DNA from: Dimorphilus gyrociliatus
Lineage: Eukaryota; Animalia; Annelida
Length of the DNA: 64,000 nt
NCBI GenBank assembly: GCA_904063045.1
Contig: CAJFCJ010000006.1
Location: 1,183,771 to 1,247,770 of the forward strand
Direction: 5' to 3'
The notes beneath the pieces were generated by a model that was not told where the DNA came from, searched no databases, and saw nothing but the letters and a program-made list of their open reading frames with translations. Made by a program: the position numbers and the translations under genes. Positions 28,746 to 64,000 of the stretch are shown here, in pieces (the stretch's first letter is position 1; each line of letters starts with the position of its first letter).

Positions 28746-28790
<45 letters not shown>
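28746..28790. repeat. (AT)n microsatellite
   Basis: About 22 AT units read directly. Confidence 0.95.
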
Positions 28791-30786: not shown

Positions 30787-32179
30787 ATGGCGTTACCGTC
30801 GTTTGAACCCGTTGAACTTTGCTACGTGCAGGTGCAGTTTAGATAAATAAAAATTTTTGCAAGCAAACGACTGATTGCTAAAAATTACAACGTTGGAGAT
30901 GGCATAAAGATGAATATTTAATTAGCTAGCAGATAGCTCTCTTCCTGTGTACAGTTTACGGAGGTGTTATTGATCGACGTCCTACATAAACGCTGTATTG
31001 CAGTACAATACAATAAAAATGAATTCTGGCGAAGATTACGACGTTCCACCGTCTCCCCGGCCTATACAGTACTACTCTTCACCGTCTGACAGTGGTAGAG
31101 GAACACCGAAATTTTTCGATCCTATATACGATCTGGTAGATGATCAAAGAGATTCTGCAATCGGTTTAGGAGAGAATCGTTTATCATCAGCTTCATCCCT
31201 ACCCTCTGTAGGGTTCGAAGAATTGAATTTATCAAGGGACGAGGCAGTATCGGCTATTTTAAAGGTTGAAAAGAACCTAGATTCGGCTTGTAATCGATTA
31301 CTATCAGCCTCCTCAGCCAAGCAGATAGATGCCACTTTCGAGCGTCAAGTTCATTCGGCATTCAATAATGTTATTACTAGTTTAAGAGAGCTATTAGAAT
31401 TATGCAAAGGTTCAATCGGTAGTGCAGATAGGAATTGCGATGAGAAATCTGTACCAAAGAAATTATTCTCCCTTTTGGAACCAGTCGATAGCGCCTTTGG
31501 AACCCTTACATCGAATATTCACAAACTGGATAGATGTGGGTGGAATTTAAAATCATCTGTCGAAATCCTACAAGCTTCCCTGGCAGTCGTACGACATCTT
31601 ATATCCGATTGTGGACGATTGATAACGGTTATACAAGCAAATAGCTCATCGATTTTTAATCCCGATATACCAGTCAAGACGGAAGATTCAATGACAGCAG
31701 TCTATTCAACTCCTAAACCAAAAACAGCACCAAAACCAAAAAAAAACATATGCATAGTCCGAGCATTAAATAATAAATTAACGGGTGAAGATCGTCATCT
31801 ACTCGACGATTACAAGTCTTTTGTAGAAAAGCAATGCAACATAGTTCAAAGTTACGTATCAGCCTATACAGACAGCGTCTCTAGCAAGGACCAACCGATC
31901 GTTTATGTGGAAAAGATTCGCCAAGTAGTCGTCAGTGCTCAAGCCCTCGTTCATGTTACTGACACCTTACACCGACATCTAAAATGTGAGTCAGTAAGAG
32001 AAGGCATTTACAAAGTTGGAGCATCACTTTGTGAATCTTTAAAATCCTGTGTTTTAGAAGCAAAAAAAGCTTTAGAAATCCACAATCACAGTAAAACAAC
32101 TACTGATTGCGTCAACGAGATTTTACATTACGTTAAACAAGTGAAATTAGTCATTCTTCATGCCGAAACACTCTTATAG
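30787..32179 (+). CDS. CAS-family (BCAR1/NEDD9-like) protein with serine-rich and C-terminal FAT-like domains but no SH3
   Basis: YDVP motif; serine-rich four-helix start LNLSRDEAVSAILKVEKNL; CAS C-terminal domain DRHLL...QPIVYVEKIRQVVVSAQALVHVTDTL...LCESLK. The short first exon MALPSFEPVELCYVQ splices in frame. Confidence 0.75.
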
Positions 32180-32299: not shown

Positions 32300-32974
32300 A
32301 TGAAGTATTTGAAATTAAACTCGACTTTTTATATAGTTTTTATAACTTTTTGCCTGATTATTCATGATTGTCAATCTAAGAGTTTCGATACAAAACCTAA
32401 TAATCGTAAAATTGCGAAAAGAGAAACTCCTGACGCCTATAACGAACGTCAAAATGGGGAAGATGATGGAGAAGATAGCATAGACGATGATATAGATGGT
32501 AGTTTAGAAGATGAAAGAGATGATAATAAAGAACGTGGAGGAGAGACTAGAAAAAGCTACAATTTTGACGACGAAGGAGAAGATGATGAAACGGAAGGTG
32601 ACGAAGGTGAAGAAAGCAAACAAAGCGACCAGGAAAATGACGGGCAAGATGATGACGACAATGGTGAAGTAGAGGATTATAATAAAGATGATGGTGGGGA
32701 AGGGGATCGTAATGAAAATAATGGGATAGTTGGAACTGAAGATGACGACGATGGACAAGGTGATGAAAGTGAAGAAGATGAAGAAGAAGACGAGGGGAAA
32801 GGTGATAAGAAAGAGGAAGAAGACGAGGAAGCAGAAAGAGACGAAGCGAACGAGGAAGATGATGAAGAGGGGGCAGAAGACGAAGAGGAGGAAGAGGAAG
32901 ACGATGAGGATGAGGAAGAAGATGAGGATGAGGATGAAGATGAGGAGGAGAACGACGATAATGACAATATTTAG
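32300..32974 (+). CDS. Secreted extremely Asp/Glu-rich protein
   Basis: Signal peptide MKYLKLNSTFYIVFITFCLIIHDCQS, dibasic KR site, then about 180 aa dominated by D/E/G/N; intronless. Confidence 0.75.
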   Translation: MKYLKLNSTFYIVFITFCLIIHDCQSKSFDTKPNNRKIAKRETPDAYNERQNGEDDGEDSIDDDIDGSLEDERDDNKERGGETRKSYNFDDEGEDDETEGDEGEESKQSDQENDGQDDDDNGEVEDYNKDDGGEGDRNENNGIVGTEDDDDGQGDESEEDEEEDEGKGDKKEEEDEEAERDEANEEDDEEGAEDEEEEEEDDEDEEEDEDEDEDEEENDDNDNI

Positions 32975-48979: not shown

Positions 48980-51900
48980 AAGTTCTTAAGATGTTTGGTT
49001 TTCTCTTTTCATTATCAAAGAATACGTGGGGGGAAGGTGAAAAATATGAAAGGGGGAATATTGTACCTTATAACAGTCTCTTAATTATACGCTTTCAATA
49101 GACATACATCTGCTCGATTGAGTGTATAAACGAGTAAAAATATCTGTTTTTATAGGTACGATAATAGGGCTCGACTTGCACCTGTTCCATAATCTTACAG
49201 TTCAATACTCGCCGTTTTGTCGAGAGGACTTTTGTGTTGGGTGACAAATGTTAAATGGAAACATAAGGCTAAACAGTATGGTCGATTGACAGGAAAATTT
49301 TAAATGATTTGATAGATCATTTCCTGACTCTCTCCTTCTCCCTCTCTCTGTCTCTCTCAGTCCAACTCGTTCAATCTCTCTTTCTCAAATTAGACACATC
49401 AGATTATAAATCACAGTAAACGAGATATTTAAGCGTCTCATTTTCTTCCAATCGGCACATGAACACTTTAAAATACTCGATGTACACCTCATTTCCACCA
49501 AAGAGCCGTCGGCAATGGTCATATTTGGAGGAGTGAACAAAGGGCGAAAGTTGCTTATTTATGCATTCGAATTGCCTATTAGGTGTTGTATGGCGTTCCA
49601 AACTGGTGCAATACCTACAGATTACATTCTTTCTCGTCTCCTTAGGTTCCATTCTTTAGGGCAATTCTCTTTATGCTAATATTGTACCCCTTATCGAGAG
49701 CGAGCAAATCGTATACAACTTTCTATAGGCCATTTTGGAATCTACATATAAGAGTTAATTTTCGCTGCGGCTGGTACGAATAGTGGACATGACCTACGAC
49801 CTTGTCACGCCATGTTCGCATTATCACCGACTAAATTTAATGGGGGTCCTAATAAAGAGATAAAAAGTTAAAAGGAAATACTTTGAAAGCAAAGTAATGG
49901 GAAACAGGAAAAAAAGCGGAAGCCGGAAGCGAACGAACACTTCGCCAAGTAGGAATAGGAGAAAGGAGGAGAAAGATAAGCATCTTGCAATTGCTGTGGG
50001 ACGTACCCCATCGAGTTTCAGTCGGTATTTGGGGCCTACCGCTGAGAAATTCGAAAGACTCAAATTGAAATTAGGTCCTTAGCTCAAACATAACAATTCG
50101 TAAATAGGGCTCGGTGATTGTACAATAGTCTGGTAACGACCATTACGTTAATTAAACAAGGGACCACCCGCATTCCAGATCCTCCTACTAAGCAATCAGA
50201 AAGGGCGACATTTTTATCGTTAAATAAAACCAGCGTAAAAATAACTTAATGTACTTTTATTTTCATGCTTAACAAAAGTCTACGCCGTGCTTTATGACGC
50301 GAGCCAAGATTCAAACGACATCATTTATCAGATGAATACAATTGATACGATTTAAAAGACTGTCGCTAATATTCCAATTCTTTCAATCGCTCCTTCCTTT
50401 TAACTTTCTTAAACGTTTCAATTTGAGATTTAAATCAAGACGTAAATTAGCACTTGGGAAAATATAGGCCAAAATACTTAAAAATATCGGTTAAGTATTC
50501 TAAAATTTACAACGTGCCAAGCCGGACCTCAAGCGTTTCCATAAGCACTTTTTGACGACCAATAATTTTTCGCATTAAAATATCATCGGTCAAAGACCGA
50601 TTCCCAAACGTTCGCAAAATGTCCGTTTGATTAGAGCGTTTAAGCTCAACGATTCGATTGGGAAATTTATGGAATAAAGGTAGTTATTGAGGAGACTTAC
50701 TTGGGTGGCCTACTGTGGTACGGGCCTTTTGTACCGCCTCGGGCGGGCATAGGGGTGAAGAAGACATCAAACGCTTTTAGCCGACAGTCCCAAAATGAAA
50801 CAATCTACTTTGGAAGGTGTTCTAAATACCGTAAATAGTAGGTCTTTTACAAAGTCGAATTACTTAGATTGAGATATCAACCGTTTTTGATTTATATACT
50901 GCATCTGGCAAATGTCACCTTTTCCACCCTCCTCACTGACCCTTTCATCTTTACTACTACCCAATCTCGACCATACGTTAAACCGTTCAAAAGCCGAACG
51001 TGATGGGGTTGAAAGGACGCGCGGAATGCACTTATAGGTTTATAATTGGATTAAAAAGAAGGAATAATACCTTTGCCTTGTAAAATAGAATGATCTTTTG
51101 TCTTCGAATAAAACGTTGTTTGACTTCCATGCTTTTCTAACCGTTTCTCCTCCATGATCACCTGTGGTTCCAATGCCAACTTATTCAAATCTTTCGACAA
51201 CGGTACAGCCATCTTGACCAATGACGTAATCTTATTGCGTAATAGCCCGGTGTGAAGTAGAAACCCTGTAGAGATGGTGAAAAACGTTTCTTAAAAGGTG
51301 TACCTTAGCGAAAGTTTTATAGCGTTTCTAAAAGGAAATTCAAGAGTAGTTCCCGTATTTATGAGAAACGCTCTACACAAGGCCTACTGCACACAACAGG
51401 ATCGAATTCGATTAAAAAGAAAACATAGAAGATTGTATAGTAAATAACTAGAACATCCTTGTAATCAGGTCGAGAAACATATCAAAGAGAGGACAATTGC
51501 AAATTCCAATATGAACCGACGGCAAATATTTGCAGTTTTATCTTATTAAAATAGCGCCTTTGTTGACCTGTGTAGGCCTAATATACTATTTTACGATGCA
51601 TATACCAGCTAACAACAAGCGAGTGGACATGATAAGGGAGATAGAAGTATATTTTTTAAGTAGACCGAGTCTATTTATGAATATACATGTCATTTACCTT
51701 TAAGTAAATAAAATCTGCTTACAAAGTCGAATATTAAGAAAAGAGGCGTATAACCTTAGTATTCAATGACAACAAGCTCGAGGGTTATTTCGAATGTAAT
51801 AAGCCTATGTCGCGAAAATATGCAAATTTTGCTCCGAGTATAACAATTATATTGTTACGATTCCTTATATACATGCGGCTTGCAAGGTAATTAAACCAAA

Positions 51901-61618: not shown

Positions 61619-62219
61619 CTCTTTCTACTTGAGTGAAAGCAAAAATAAAAAGTTGTAAAGATTTTTTCTTTACATATATTACGCAAGCGTGTAAAGTATC
61701 ATCATCGACTCGATAATTGATAAGCAAACAGCATGCCGAAGGCGATTTAAACTCTTCGCATATAGCACACCGCCTTTTGATGTCTATAGGTATTCGGAAA
61801 TCGAAGCTTTTTCGACGGAAAACACCTGCGCCGAAAAAATTGAAACCTCGCAATTTTCTAAATTTTAGCATCAAACACTTCAAAGCTATCTGCTGATTGT
61901 CCACTAGCAACGTACAATTAAACAGTTTATTAGTAACGAAATGTCCTGTTTAACTACACCTGCGAGACGTTTCGTAATTATTCACGGTAAATTAAAGCCG
62001 CCTTTAATTATTACTAATTATTGTTAGCGGGTGGCTTGAGTGTTGAAAAGGAATTTCTAGACCTGATTTATTCATATAAAAATAGATATATTAATACTAC
62101 TCAAAAATTGAATTAATGGGTTAAGGTTCATGTTAAAATTTCAATTTTTTTGACTGTATGTACGTTAAAGGTTATTAGGAGTAGAATGACGAATATGAAC
62201 AGAATTTTCAGTTTCATTC

Positions 62220-64000
62220 TTAGTGATTCCTTTTGTTATTTTCATAAGAAGAGAGGTTAGCAACGTGACCTGACGTGCAGTAAATACTCGAATTTAAATT
62301 GTCTACTCTTGAGCTTTCAGGCTTCTCTTCAATATCTTTTGCGTTGTCCCGTTTTTTCGCTTTTTTCCGCTTTCTGGATAGAATGAGGAGAAGTGCTACG
62401 ATTACCCTGTTCTTGAATGCTTTTACGAATGTACTCTTGGTCTGTTTGAAGATTACCGAAGGTTCATATATGCTCATAGAGGTCATACGTAATTATTTTC
62501 GTTTTACCTTTTGAACATCCCGAAATGCGGCTACGATAAATTCTAGCAACAGTATGAGAACTGCCAAGCCTATCCCAACGGCTATGAAGTAGAACACTCC
62601 CAACAGACTTTCTAAAGTTTGCGATCGGGCTGCCGTTTTAGAAGAGCCTAAAGAACGATAAGTGTCCTCTTTTAAGTATGCATAAACGATATACTAAAAA
62701 TATACTGCATATATATTTAAAGAACAGAAAGAAAAGAGGATGAAAATTTAGATGGGATTAGGCACTAACTAGATTGCGTAGCTGAGCAGGGTCCAGCAAA
62801 CCATTTCCTGTGAAGCGTTTCTAAATACCCGCTTTGTCGGAGCATTAAAATTTCCAATGTGAACGGCGTTAAGTAGGGACTGTTACGCTACGGATTGGCT
62901 TTGAAAGATCGTTTGAAGGGATTCAACACCCGCTTCTATTTTCAATGTTAAAAGACGAATCGTTAATTAGCCACCTAGAGTGAAGGCAATCAATTCTACC
63001 CTGTTCCCTTTCTATACCCCTTTTAAACCCCCCCATCGGATTCATTCTCAAATTATACGGTATTATGCATTCTACGAAGTCACTTTTATGAGTCGAAACC
63101 TTCAAAGCCAATCCGTAGCCAAATTTATTAAAATCGTTTCCGATAATTAAGGTATTACAAGGCTTGATGTTTGAAGCGTATTCCAAAGGGGCCGAATCCC
63201 ATACAAATGCGTAACGTTCATCTGAAAGAAAATGGTAATAAGAAATTACAAGATGAAATAAAAAAGGGCTATTAATCGAAAGTAATTAATTACTTTTGGG
63301 TTTCCCGTAGGACTCTTGAACTTTTCGAATGCCAGCTTCCGCTGTATCAACGTATGTTCCGTCGGCGTTCATAATTGCGAACATAGTTTTATAAGGATCT
63401 ACCAGCTGTTGAGCGAAGAATCTCTGAGGGGCGGAATTTTTCACAGTTCCGTATTCAATATCTCTTTGTTTGGCTAAGTCGTTAACCGATTGAATTCCAG
63501 TATCCAATCGCTTTACCGTCAAAAAGGCGGCCAAATTAGCCGTATACGAAGCAGAGATAACCATTACTGCAAACCACCAAGTACCAAACACGATTCTGGC
63601 AGATAAGCATTTCGGATAAGTTTCAGTCCCTTGTTGCATCCAACACCCATAAGTCGCCCAGAGACTATTACATAAAGTAAGGTTCTCATGTTCCGTTTCG
63701 TTATCCAATTGAGCATAATATCCCAAGCTATAGGGACTAAGTCGACTGCAGATGCAAGTTATCACAGAACAAATAATAAAAGTGCCTACTACGGCTGCCC
63801 ATAATCCCTTTTCAAAGGGCTCCAAGTATCCGTATATATTCACTTTCTCTACTTCCTTGGACAATAGTAATTTAAGCCCTAGGTCCATGTATGGTTTTGT
63901 AAAACCAACAACCTGTTGTCTCTCATAATTTATAGTCAGGGGAGCAACAGCCATATCAATTTCCTCACTCATCACTTCGCCGATCAAGCCGTTCCATTTT
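62220..64000 (-). CDS. Ionotropic glutamate receptor, non-NMDA (kainate/AMPA-like), 3' part
   Basis: APLTINYER..VVGFTKPYMDLG, pore WMQQG, SYTANLAAFLT, IEYGTVKNS, AFVWDS, GYGLALK|RNSPY...LHRKWF...C and M4 LLGVFYFIAVGIGLAVLILLLEF. Exons >64000-63294, 63221-63100, 62887-62770, 62647-62508 and 62441-62220 are all phase-consistent. Confidence 0.95.
62887..63119. repeat. Perfect 19-bp inverted repeat joining an exon end to the next 3' splice site
   Basis: 62887-62905 GCTACGGATTGGCTTTGAA is the exact reverse complement of 63101-63119 TTCAAAGCCAATCCGTAGC. Confidence 0.97.

Follow-up and report, generated by a model that had tools for sequence, protein, structure and literature searches.

How does an intron come to end in the exact antisense copy of the exon that precedes it, and what does such an ending do to the RNA? 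The question is raised by a receptor gene in the 64-kb stretch of DNA analysed here (the window). It touches on two matters that have been argued from few clean cases, the birth of introns in animals and the splicing of fresh insertions with poor signals. A first-pass annotation of the sequence had offered three readings of the arrangement: a substrate for editing by ADAR, a structure-controlled splice switch, or the scar of intron birth by inverted duplication.

Gene structure and splice signals

The gene lies on the minus strand and encodes an AMPA/kainate-like ionotropic glutamate receptor. Its joined exons give the C-terminal 435 residues of the receptor, comprising the pore (MQQG), SYTANLAAFLTV, the S2 lobe (YAFVWDS ... 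GYGLALK RNSPY ... KWFAGPC), M4 and the tail. The Pfam families Lig_chan and Lig_chan-Glu_bd (PF00060, PF10613) are recognised on the receptor, and its closest named relatives are of the kainate type, at ~40% identity. The intron of interest separates two exons of the S2 region, both of which are covered by RNA contigs.

63100 to 63221, minus strand: upstream exon (S2 lobe, NERYAFVWDS...FGYGLALK), from RNA contigs
62888 to 63099, minus strand: 212-nt GT-AG intron, phase 0, between ...GYGLALK and RNSPYL...; RNA joint 62887>63100
62769 to 62887, minus strand: downstream exon (RNSPYLTPFTLEILMLRQSGYLETLHRKWFAGPCSATQSS), from RNA contigs

The splice signals of this intron are poor. The donor, AAG/GUUUCG, matches U1 at 4 of 9 positions, which are contiguous, and is very weak. 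The intron has no polypyrimidine tract, and its last 20 nt are not rich in pyrimidines. The three neighbouring introns have donors GUAAUU, GUUAGU and GUAAAA and ordinary pyrimidine tracts.

Several other identities for the intron were considered. On inspection of the sequence the donor is unsuitable for a U12-type intron. Rfam gave no match within the 212 nt at E values up to 1, which argues against a known RNA family, a snoRNA or a miRNA. An origin from a transposon (introner or MITE) or other repeat element would lead one to expect further copies and a target-site duplication; the 64-kb window holds no second copy of the intron, and its junctions carry no direct duplication. The following exon is present in the window in one copy with no paralogue, contrary to what alternative or mutually exclusive exons would require.

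A helix over both splice sites

The two ends of the intron are joined by a perfect inverted repeat of 19 nt (62887-62905 and 63101-63119), in which the arms are 100% complementary and 195 nt apart. With 3 mismatches permitted, the 19-mer occurs just twice in the whole window. In a scan of the window for inverted repeats of at least 16 nt within 300 nt, this was the sole example outside low-complexity sequence. A self-complementary low-complexity tract at 28746-28790 was the source of every other long inverted-repeat match in the window.

63101 to 63119, minus strand: exonic arm, exon positions -20 to -2, codons (G)GC to AA(G), encoding GYGLALK
62887 to 62905, minus strand: second arm, the final 18 intron nucleotides including the acceptor UAG, and the base that opens the next exon (62887)
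62906 to 62907, minus strand: helix-extending intron bases, U 62906 pairing with exon G 63100 (G.U) and C 62907 with intron G+1 63099

The minus strand is the transcribed one, and in the RNA the exon ends ...GGC UAC GGA UUG GCU UUG AAG, followed by GU, while the intron ends ...UUCAAAGCCAAUCCGUAG/C. Exon positions -19 to -2 recur exactly, in inverted orientation, as the closing 18 nt of the intron. Repeat search and folding agree with the first-pass annotation that the exon end and the 3' end of the intron form a perfect 19-bp duplex, and that a G.U and a G-C pair carry it across the 5' splice site, to 21 bp. The duplex energy is -37.5 kcal/mol. When the region was folded in contexts of 281, 601 and 1001 nt, all 19 pairs had a probability above 0.98, and local hairpins competing for either arm were only weak (-4.8 and -6.5 kcal/mol). 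The helix of 20-21 bp loops out the whole intron and holds both the exonic half of the donor and the acceptor AG within it, so that both splice sites of a single intron take part in one stable pairing, as a helix controlling splicing would require.

Age of the intron

No intron is present at the GYGxxx/xNSPY position in seven of seven homologues from other animals with genomic loci (L003, L004, L005, L006, L013, L014 and L015), which were picked as nearest in the large exon described below or in S2; P0098 and P0107 have no genomic record and stand outside this count. In L003, L004, L013, L014 and L015, the last of which (accession GCA_000328365.1) we take to be the annelid Capitella teleta, a single exon reads across the position. 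L005 has an intron eight codons upstream of it. In L006 an intron lies six codons downstream, at ...DSDIR/HEV, which is the position of the vertebrate R/G-flip/flop intron; this position and the GYGLALK/RNSPY intron are therefore six codons apart and are not the same. By contrast, the 72-nt intron before ...YAFVWDS and the two that flank M4 are at or near positions shared with homologues.

Alignments of S2 with the nearest homologues are gapless across the junction, which shows that the insertion was seamless, with no codon gained or lost. Since the intron is absent in the seven homologues and present in the sister-species contig L001 (see below), it is a lineage-specific gain older than the split from L001. 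The suggestion that the repeat is a scar of intron birth is supported by this absence and by the way in which the arms abut both insertion junctions. The recency of the intron is well supported, and the mechanism of its birth is one that we infer. Because the copy is just 18-19 nt long, a templated insertion fits better than a large inverted duplication.

In the upstream part of the gene, a large exon (at least 235 codons) occupies 63294-64000 and continues beyond the end of the window, running from the end of S1 through M1-M3 into S2 without an intron. Homologues are interrupted in this region, for example after FLTV... in L005 and L006, so that the lineage has lost ancestral introns in the same gene in which it gained one. 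In a separate observation, L013 (GCA_019207075.1) carries three near-identical tandem copies of the 26-codon exon before M4 (TGGSECA.EDAKLSTI.IGLDHMLGV), at 31917-31994, 32069-32146 and 32715-32783. Two of the three stand in series in the deposited protein, where the annotation seems to have strung together exons that are mutually exclusive alternatives.

Comparison with the sister species

The sole close orthologue in the collections searched is P0001, which is 95% identical over the 235-residue exon and is represented by the Logan genomic contigs L001 and L002. Beyond P0001, two protein searches returned nothing above 48% identity, and a protein-guided scan together with a degenerate junction pattern in metagenome contigs gave no further relatives. 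Six matches to the junction pattern in the metagenome contigs were discarded as unrelated, the one that was read being GC-rich and bacterial-looking with a weak receptor match.

L001 aligns to the window with 83-87% identity over 2.6 kb, introns included. Both arms are identical in L001 (5048-5066 and 5263-5281, 196 nt apart), against an identity of 74.6% for the intron interior, and the donor there reads GUUUCU. C 62907 is G in L001 and loses its pair with intron G+1, so the helix of the sister species is 20 bp; the U of the G.U pair is the very base at which the conserved run opens. Nowhere else in the 2.7-kb alignment are perfect runs as long as the two that hold the arms (59 and 51 nt). 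The upstream exon has no synonymous change over its final 54 nt, and in the downstream exon the opening 32 nt are unchanged. Within the intron, the most conserved part is a separate short block.

62964 to 62997, minus strand: conserved intron block, a small imperfect hairpin in both species

At the divergence of the interior, a run of 19 unchanged bases has a probability of ~0.004, or ~0.02 if 5 bases at the end are conceded to the splice signal. The figure of ~0.004 has to be discounted, because the last 29 nt of the neighbouring intron 62442-62507 are likewise unchanged in L001, ~4% of 19-nt intron windows are perfectly conserved, and the helix shows no covariation. Compensatory changes of the kind that the first-pass annotation looked to relatives for do not occur in L001. 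As every helix pair is invariant in the one available relative, conservation is the sole evolutionary evidence, and it is modest.

Conservation is also unusually high just 3' of the receptor transcript, whose RNA contigs end at ~62145. The segment 61400-62145 contains perfect runs of 40, 50 and 48 nt against the sister species (for example at 61946-62036 and 61691-61738), has no coverage in two RNA runs, and yielded neither a convincing ORF nor a significant match in Rfam. Its nature may be that of a regulatory element or of a non-coding gene that is not expressed.

Splicing and retention

Two sequencing runs of unknown library type, X2 and X3, gave contigs spliced across four GT-AG introns, which identifies them as RNA-derived. 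Both runs contain the joint 62887>63100, in which 212 nt with GT..AG ends are skipped, and both also contain an unspliced path over 62860-63129 (270 nt) that is identical to the DNA. Word depth was 111.1 for the spliced and 62.6 for the unspliced path in X2, and 21.3 and 9.35 in X3, corresponding to ~36% and ~30% unspliced RNA; these are assembler word depths from two runs without replicates. No unspliced contig was found in either X2 or X3 for the neighbouring introns of 66, 122 and 72 nt, and genomic DNA contamination is therefore not the explanation. The proposal of a structure-controlled splice switch stands in one part, as this intron alone is retained, and falls in the other, as the RNA contigs show only spliced or retained forms and no exon switch. 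The involvement of the helix in splicing is thus partly supported, through a correlation: the one intron with the helix is the one intron among four that is retained.

62923 to 62925, minus strand: in-frame TGA in the retained intron, after 58 intron codons

Two exon junctions lie 3' of this TGA, so that retained RNA should be visible to nonsense-mediated decay. In L001 the intron frame reaches a stop after 15 codons, compared with 58 here, and a coding role for the retained intron as an alternative C-terminus was rejected on this lack of frame conservation.

A third source, the marine metatranscriptome X6, yielded a contig that extends from the downstream exon 49 nt into the 212-nt intron, and spliced joints for two other introns only. 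The haplotype in X6 is ~2% diverged from the receptor gene. Its joint at the 72-nt intron is slightly different (63219>63294, with two other letters between), which suggests a wild population or a sibling strain with a changed acceptor.

Length may also bear on retention. For the genome of a miniature annelid, a median intron of 66 bp and retention that rises with intron size have been reported (PMC7854359). Introns of 66-72 nt, identical sequence under two run labels and the presence of the gene in a marine sample would fit a miniature marine annelid such as Dimorphilus (formerly Dinophilus) gyrociliatus. If the organism studied here is the annelid of that genome, the length of the intron alone could contribute.

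Proposed origin and function of the helix

We propose that the intron is young, that it probably arose through break repair with a templated inverted copy, and that its helix now acts on its own splicing. To this reading as a whole we give an even chance. In outline, repair of a double-strand break between ...AAG and CGU... would have left filler DNA at the site, and this would have become the intron. The final fill-in step would have been snap-back synthesis on the adjacent exon end, primed by 1-2 nt of microhomology. Templated inverted insertions of 5-34 bp do arise at breaks (PMC11724301), and a snap-back fill-in would set the two arms against the left and right junctions respectively, put the AG inside the copy and leave the codons unchanged. 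A search of the 64-kb window gave no source for the remaining 194 nt of the intron, and the break-repair origin itself is something that we infer.

Once made, the helix would be a cis-acting element in the splicing of its own intron. Pairing would keep U1 from at least three of the only four matching donor positions, and the acceptor AG would also be covered. With U1 excluded and the AG covered, the helix would most likely limit splicing, making removal of the intron slow or incomplete. Slow removal would leave a detained or decay-targeted fraction of the RNA, in keeping with retention of one third. An effect of the opposite sign is also conceivable, in which the helix holds the ends of the intron together and compensates for the missing signals; in structured introns a bridging helix can stand in for the pyrimidine-tract factor (PMC4691745). 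Weak splice sites, repeats that overlap them, and stops through which unspliced RNA becomes open to decay are features of newly gained introns (PMC2809761).

The main and serious rival grants the same birth and denies the helix a present role. Here the inverted copy would be a by-product of the insertion, the intronic arm would have been kept for its acceptor, branch or other 3' signals, and retention would follow from the weak donor and the length of the intron. A lineage-specific intron with arms abutting both junctions is expected on this account too, and retention can indeed be explained without the helix, by the weakness of the donor or by intron length, the latter in line with the length-dependent retention reported for the miniature annelid (PMC7854359). 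The helix pairs are invariant with no compensatory change, the 3' end of another intron is equally conserved, and the additional G-C pair is already gone in L001, all of which such a scar would allow. Against it stand the 19 unchanged bases in an intron of 74.6% interior identity, with the probability of ~0.004 (~0.02 sparing the last 5 bases) discussed above, and the fact that the conserved block and the helix end at the same base. In addition, a helix of -37.5 kcal/mol with pairing probabilities above 0.98 over both splice sites is unlikely to be without effect on splicing. We regard a functionless scar as rather unlikely, while a possibility of real weight.

A further account goes beyond our preferred one. 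A random insertion may have become a working intron by virtue of the inverted copy made in its repair, the helix, loosely akin to the way in which self-splicing introns pair with their exon, tying the intron's 3' end to the 5' exon and substituting for the missing donor and pyrimidine-tract signals, and selection may have kept the helix since. We put this version forward with less assurance, as a doubtful one. If such structure-assisted birth were true, the locus would be a direct animal example, and the same inverted signature would be predicted at other young introns of this genome.

Returning to the proposal of a repair-born intron with an active helix, its interest lies in the combination of a gain that can be dated, being absent in seven homologues and common to two sister species, with a repair-type signature that is inverted and not direct and an RNA-level effect that can be measured as one-third retention. 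A single mutational event may have made both the intron and the helix over its splice sites.

RNA editing

The first-pass annotation had seen in the duplex a candidate ADAR substrate. The helix would recruit the deaminase, which would recode Tyr (63116) or Lys (63102/63101) or edit the acceptor A (62889), in a parallel to the vertebrate R/G site that arose independently. The structure has features that would suit such a role. The duplex is 20-21 bp, at a threshold of ~16-20 bp or more, and is perfect; the transcript adenosines of its exonic arm are 63116 (in the Tyr codon), 63112 (silent) and 63102/63101 (in the Lys codon), and in the second arm lies the UAG of the acceptor, with its A at 62889 and its G at 62888. 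The receptor domain is the one that carries the R/G site, as is well established. RNA duplexes that exceed ~16 nt are able to bind ADAR domains, and efficient site-selective editing of short stems usually requires an adjacent long stem (PMC5654063). The duplex here is short and perfect, with no long stem alongside, which speaks against an efficiently edited site.

The RNA contigs, too, lend editing no support. Every piece from X2 and X3, including the spliced 58-nt and the unspliced 270-nt paths, has zero differences from the DNA. In the spliced and unspliced contigs alike, the arms read as they do in the DNA, and so does the acceptor A (62889). As contigs drop minor variants, this comparison bears on majority editing, and majority A-to-I editing is excluded by it. 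Editing of the acceptor, which had been suggested as a way of destroying it, is likewise excluded as the cause of retention, because the unspliced contigs keep the acceptor A of the DNA. Differences do occur in X6; they are of mixed types, none being A-to-G on the transcript strand, and they look like strain polymorphism.

The parallel with the R/G site was sound as to the S2 lobe, which is shared. It did not extend to the intron, which lies six codons upstream of the R/G-flip/flop position and is not homologous to the R/G intron, or to the flip/flop arrangement, the window having a single copy of the exon. What links the locus to the vertebrate R/G site is a likeness of position alone. With a mainly negative outcome to the editing question, we consider an ADAR substrate improbable and editing is not part of the best explanation.

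Chance and assembly error

Markov simulations at the composition of the window put the expected number of bare 19-nt inverted repeats with arms no more than 300 nt apart at ~4e-4 for each window, several-fold above the earlier chance figure of ~6e-5, which was too low. Over ~1300 windows, that is genome-wide, ~0.5 bare repeats would be expected, and the bare repeat is therefore not improbable on the scale of a genome. The improbable part is the coincidence of both arm ends with the two splice junctions, one arm stopping a base short of the donor and the other a base past the acceptor. When the window was scanned for inverted repeats anchored at such junctions, this 19-nt case was the only one at 13 nt or above; the others were of 10-12 nt, about the level of chance, and do not make up a class of such introns within the window. 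A 12-nt anchored case at 50059-50414 was rejected, as it does not resemble an intron.

The repeat is also real. RNA contigs of two studies and the independently assembled sister species carry the arms, and the unchanged unspliced path in independent RNA contigs, together with both arms in the second species, rules against an inversion in the assembly. Although ~0.5 bare repeats are expected genome-wide, arms that meet both splice junctions in the sole such case of the window, seen unchanged in independent RNA assemblies and in another species, leave a chance match or an assembly error a very slim prospect.

Comparison with known systems

The closest precedents for the origin are the break-repair introns of Daphnia and Drosophila (PMC2809761, PMC3020277). 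Like the intron described here, they are absent from outgroups, seamless and weak in their splice sites, contain filler whose source was not found, and give a premature stop on retention. In each, as here, a short repeat overlaps both splice sites. In those introns, however, the repeat is direct and of 8-18 bp, whereas here it is inverted, of 18-19 nt and accompanied by an RNA helix (PMC2809761, PMC3020277). The helix over both splice sites follows from the inverted orientation, since a direct repeat gives none. Retention is low in the break-repair introns and about one third here.

For the inverted copy itself, the likeness is to snap-back and synthesis-dependent end joining (PMC11724301, PMC2943611, PMC5728401), which likewise yield an inverted copy of junction-adjacent sequence from 1-2 nt of microhomology; the copy here is of 18-19 nt. 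Templated inverted insertions are known as experimental repair products, while at this locus the copy stands 194 nt of filler away from its template and the event would have to be reconstructed from its outcome.

The structural precedents are introns whose complementary ends loop them out. In the zebrafish (AC)m-(GT)n introns, yeast RP51B and Drosophila Adh (PMC4691745), such ends accompany a weak or absent pyrimidine tract, as they do here. Both arms are intronic in those cases and the splice sites are free, whereas at this locus the arm on the 5' side belongs to the exon, with the AG and the exonic half of the donor hidden in the helix. The zebrafish arms are moreover simple repeats, and the arm here is unique sequence.

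Structures that cover a splice site are also known. The donor stem of MAPT exon 10 and terminal stem-loop 2 of SMN2 are short local hairpins that regulate exon inclusion. As at this locus, the donor is paired, U1 competes with the structure and splicing is partial. The hairpins of MAPT and SMN2 are local, whereas the helix here is long-range, spans the donor and acceptor of a single intron and is accompanied by retention.

The vertebrate R/G hairpin (GRIA2-4 exon 13 / intron 13) is imperfect, ~70 nt long, and has its pairing partner just inside the intron. It resembles the present helix in lying in the S2 lobe, just upstream of the flip/flop segment, and in pairing the exon end with the following intron. 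The R/G hairpin is local, and here the partner of the exon end is the intron's distant 3' terminus. The R/G intron is six codons away, and at this locus the contigs show no editing and there are no alternative exons.

By analogy, the IBS-EBS pairing of group II introns also joins the intron to the last nucleotides of the 5' exon. Group II introns use other splicing machinery, with the pairing element in domain I, whereas here it is at the 3' end of the intron. The 212-nt intron has no group II features and no Rfam match.
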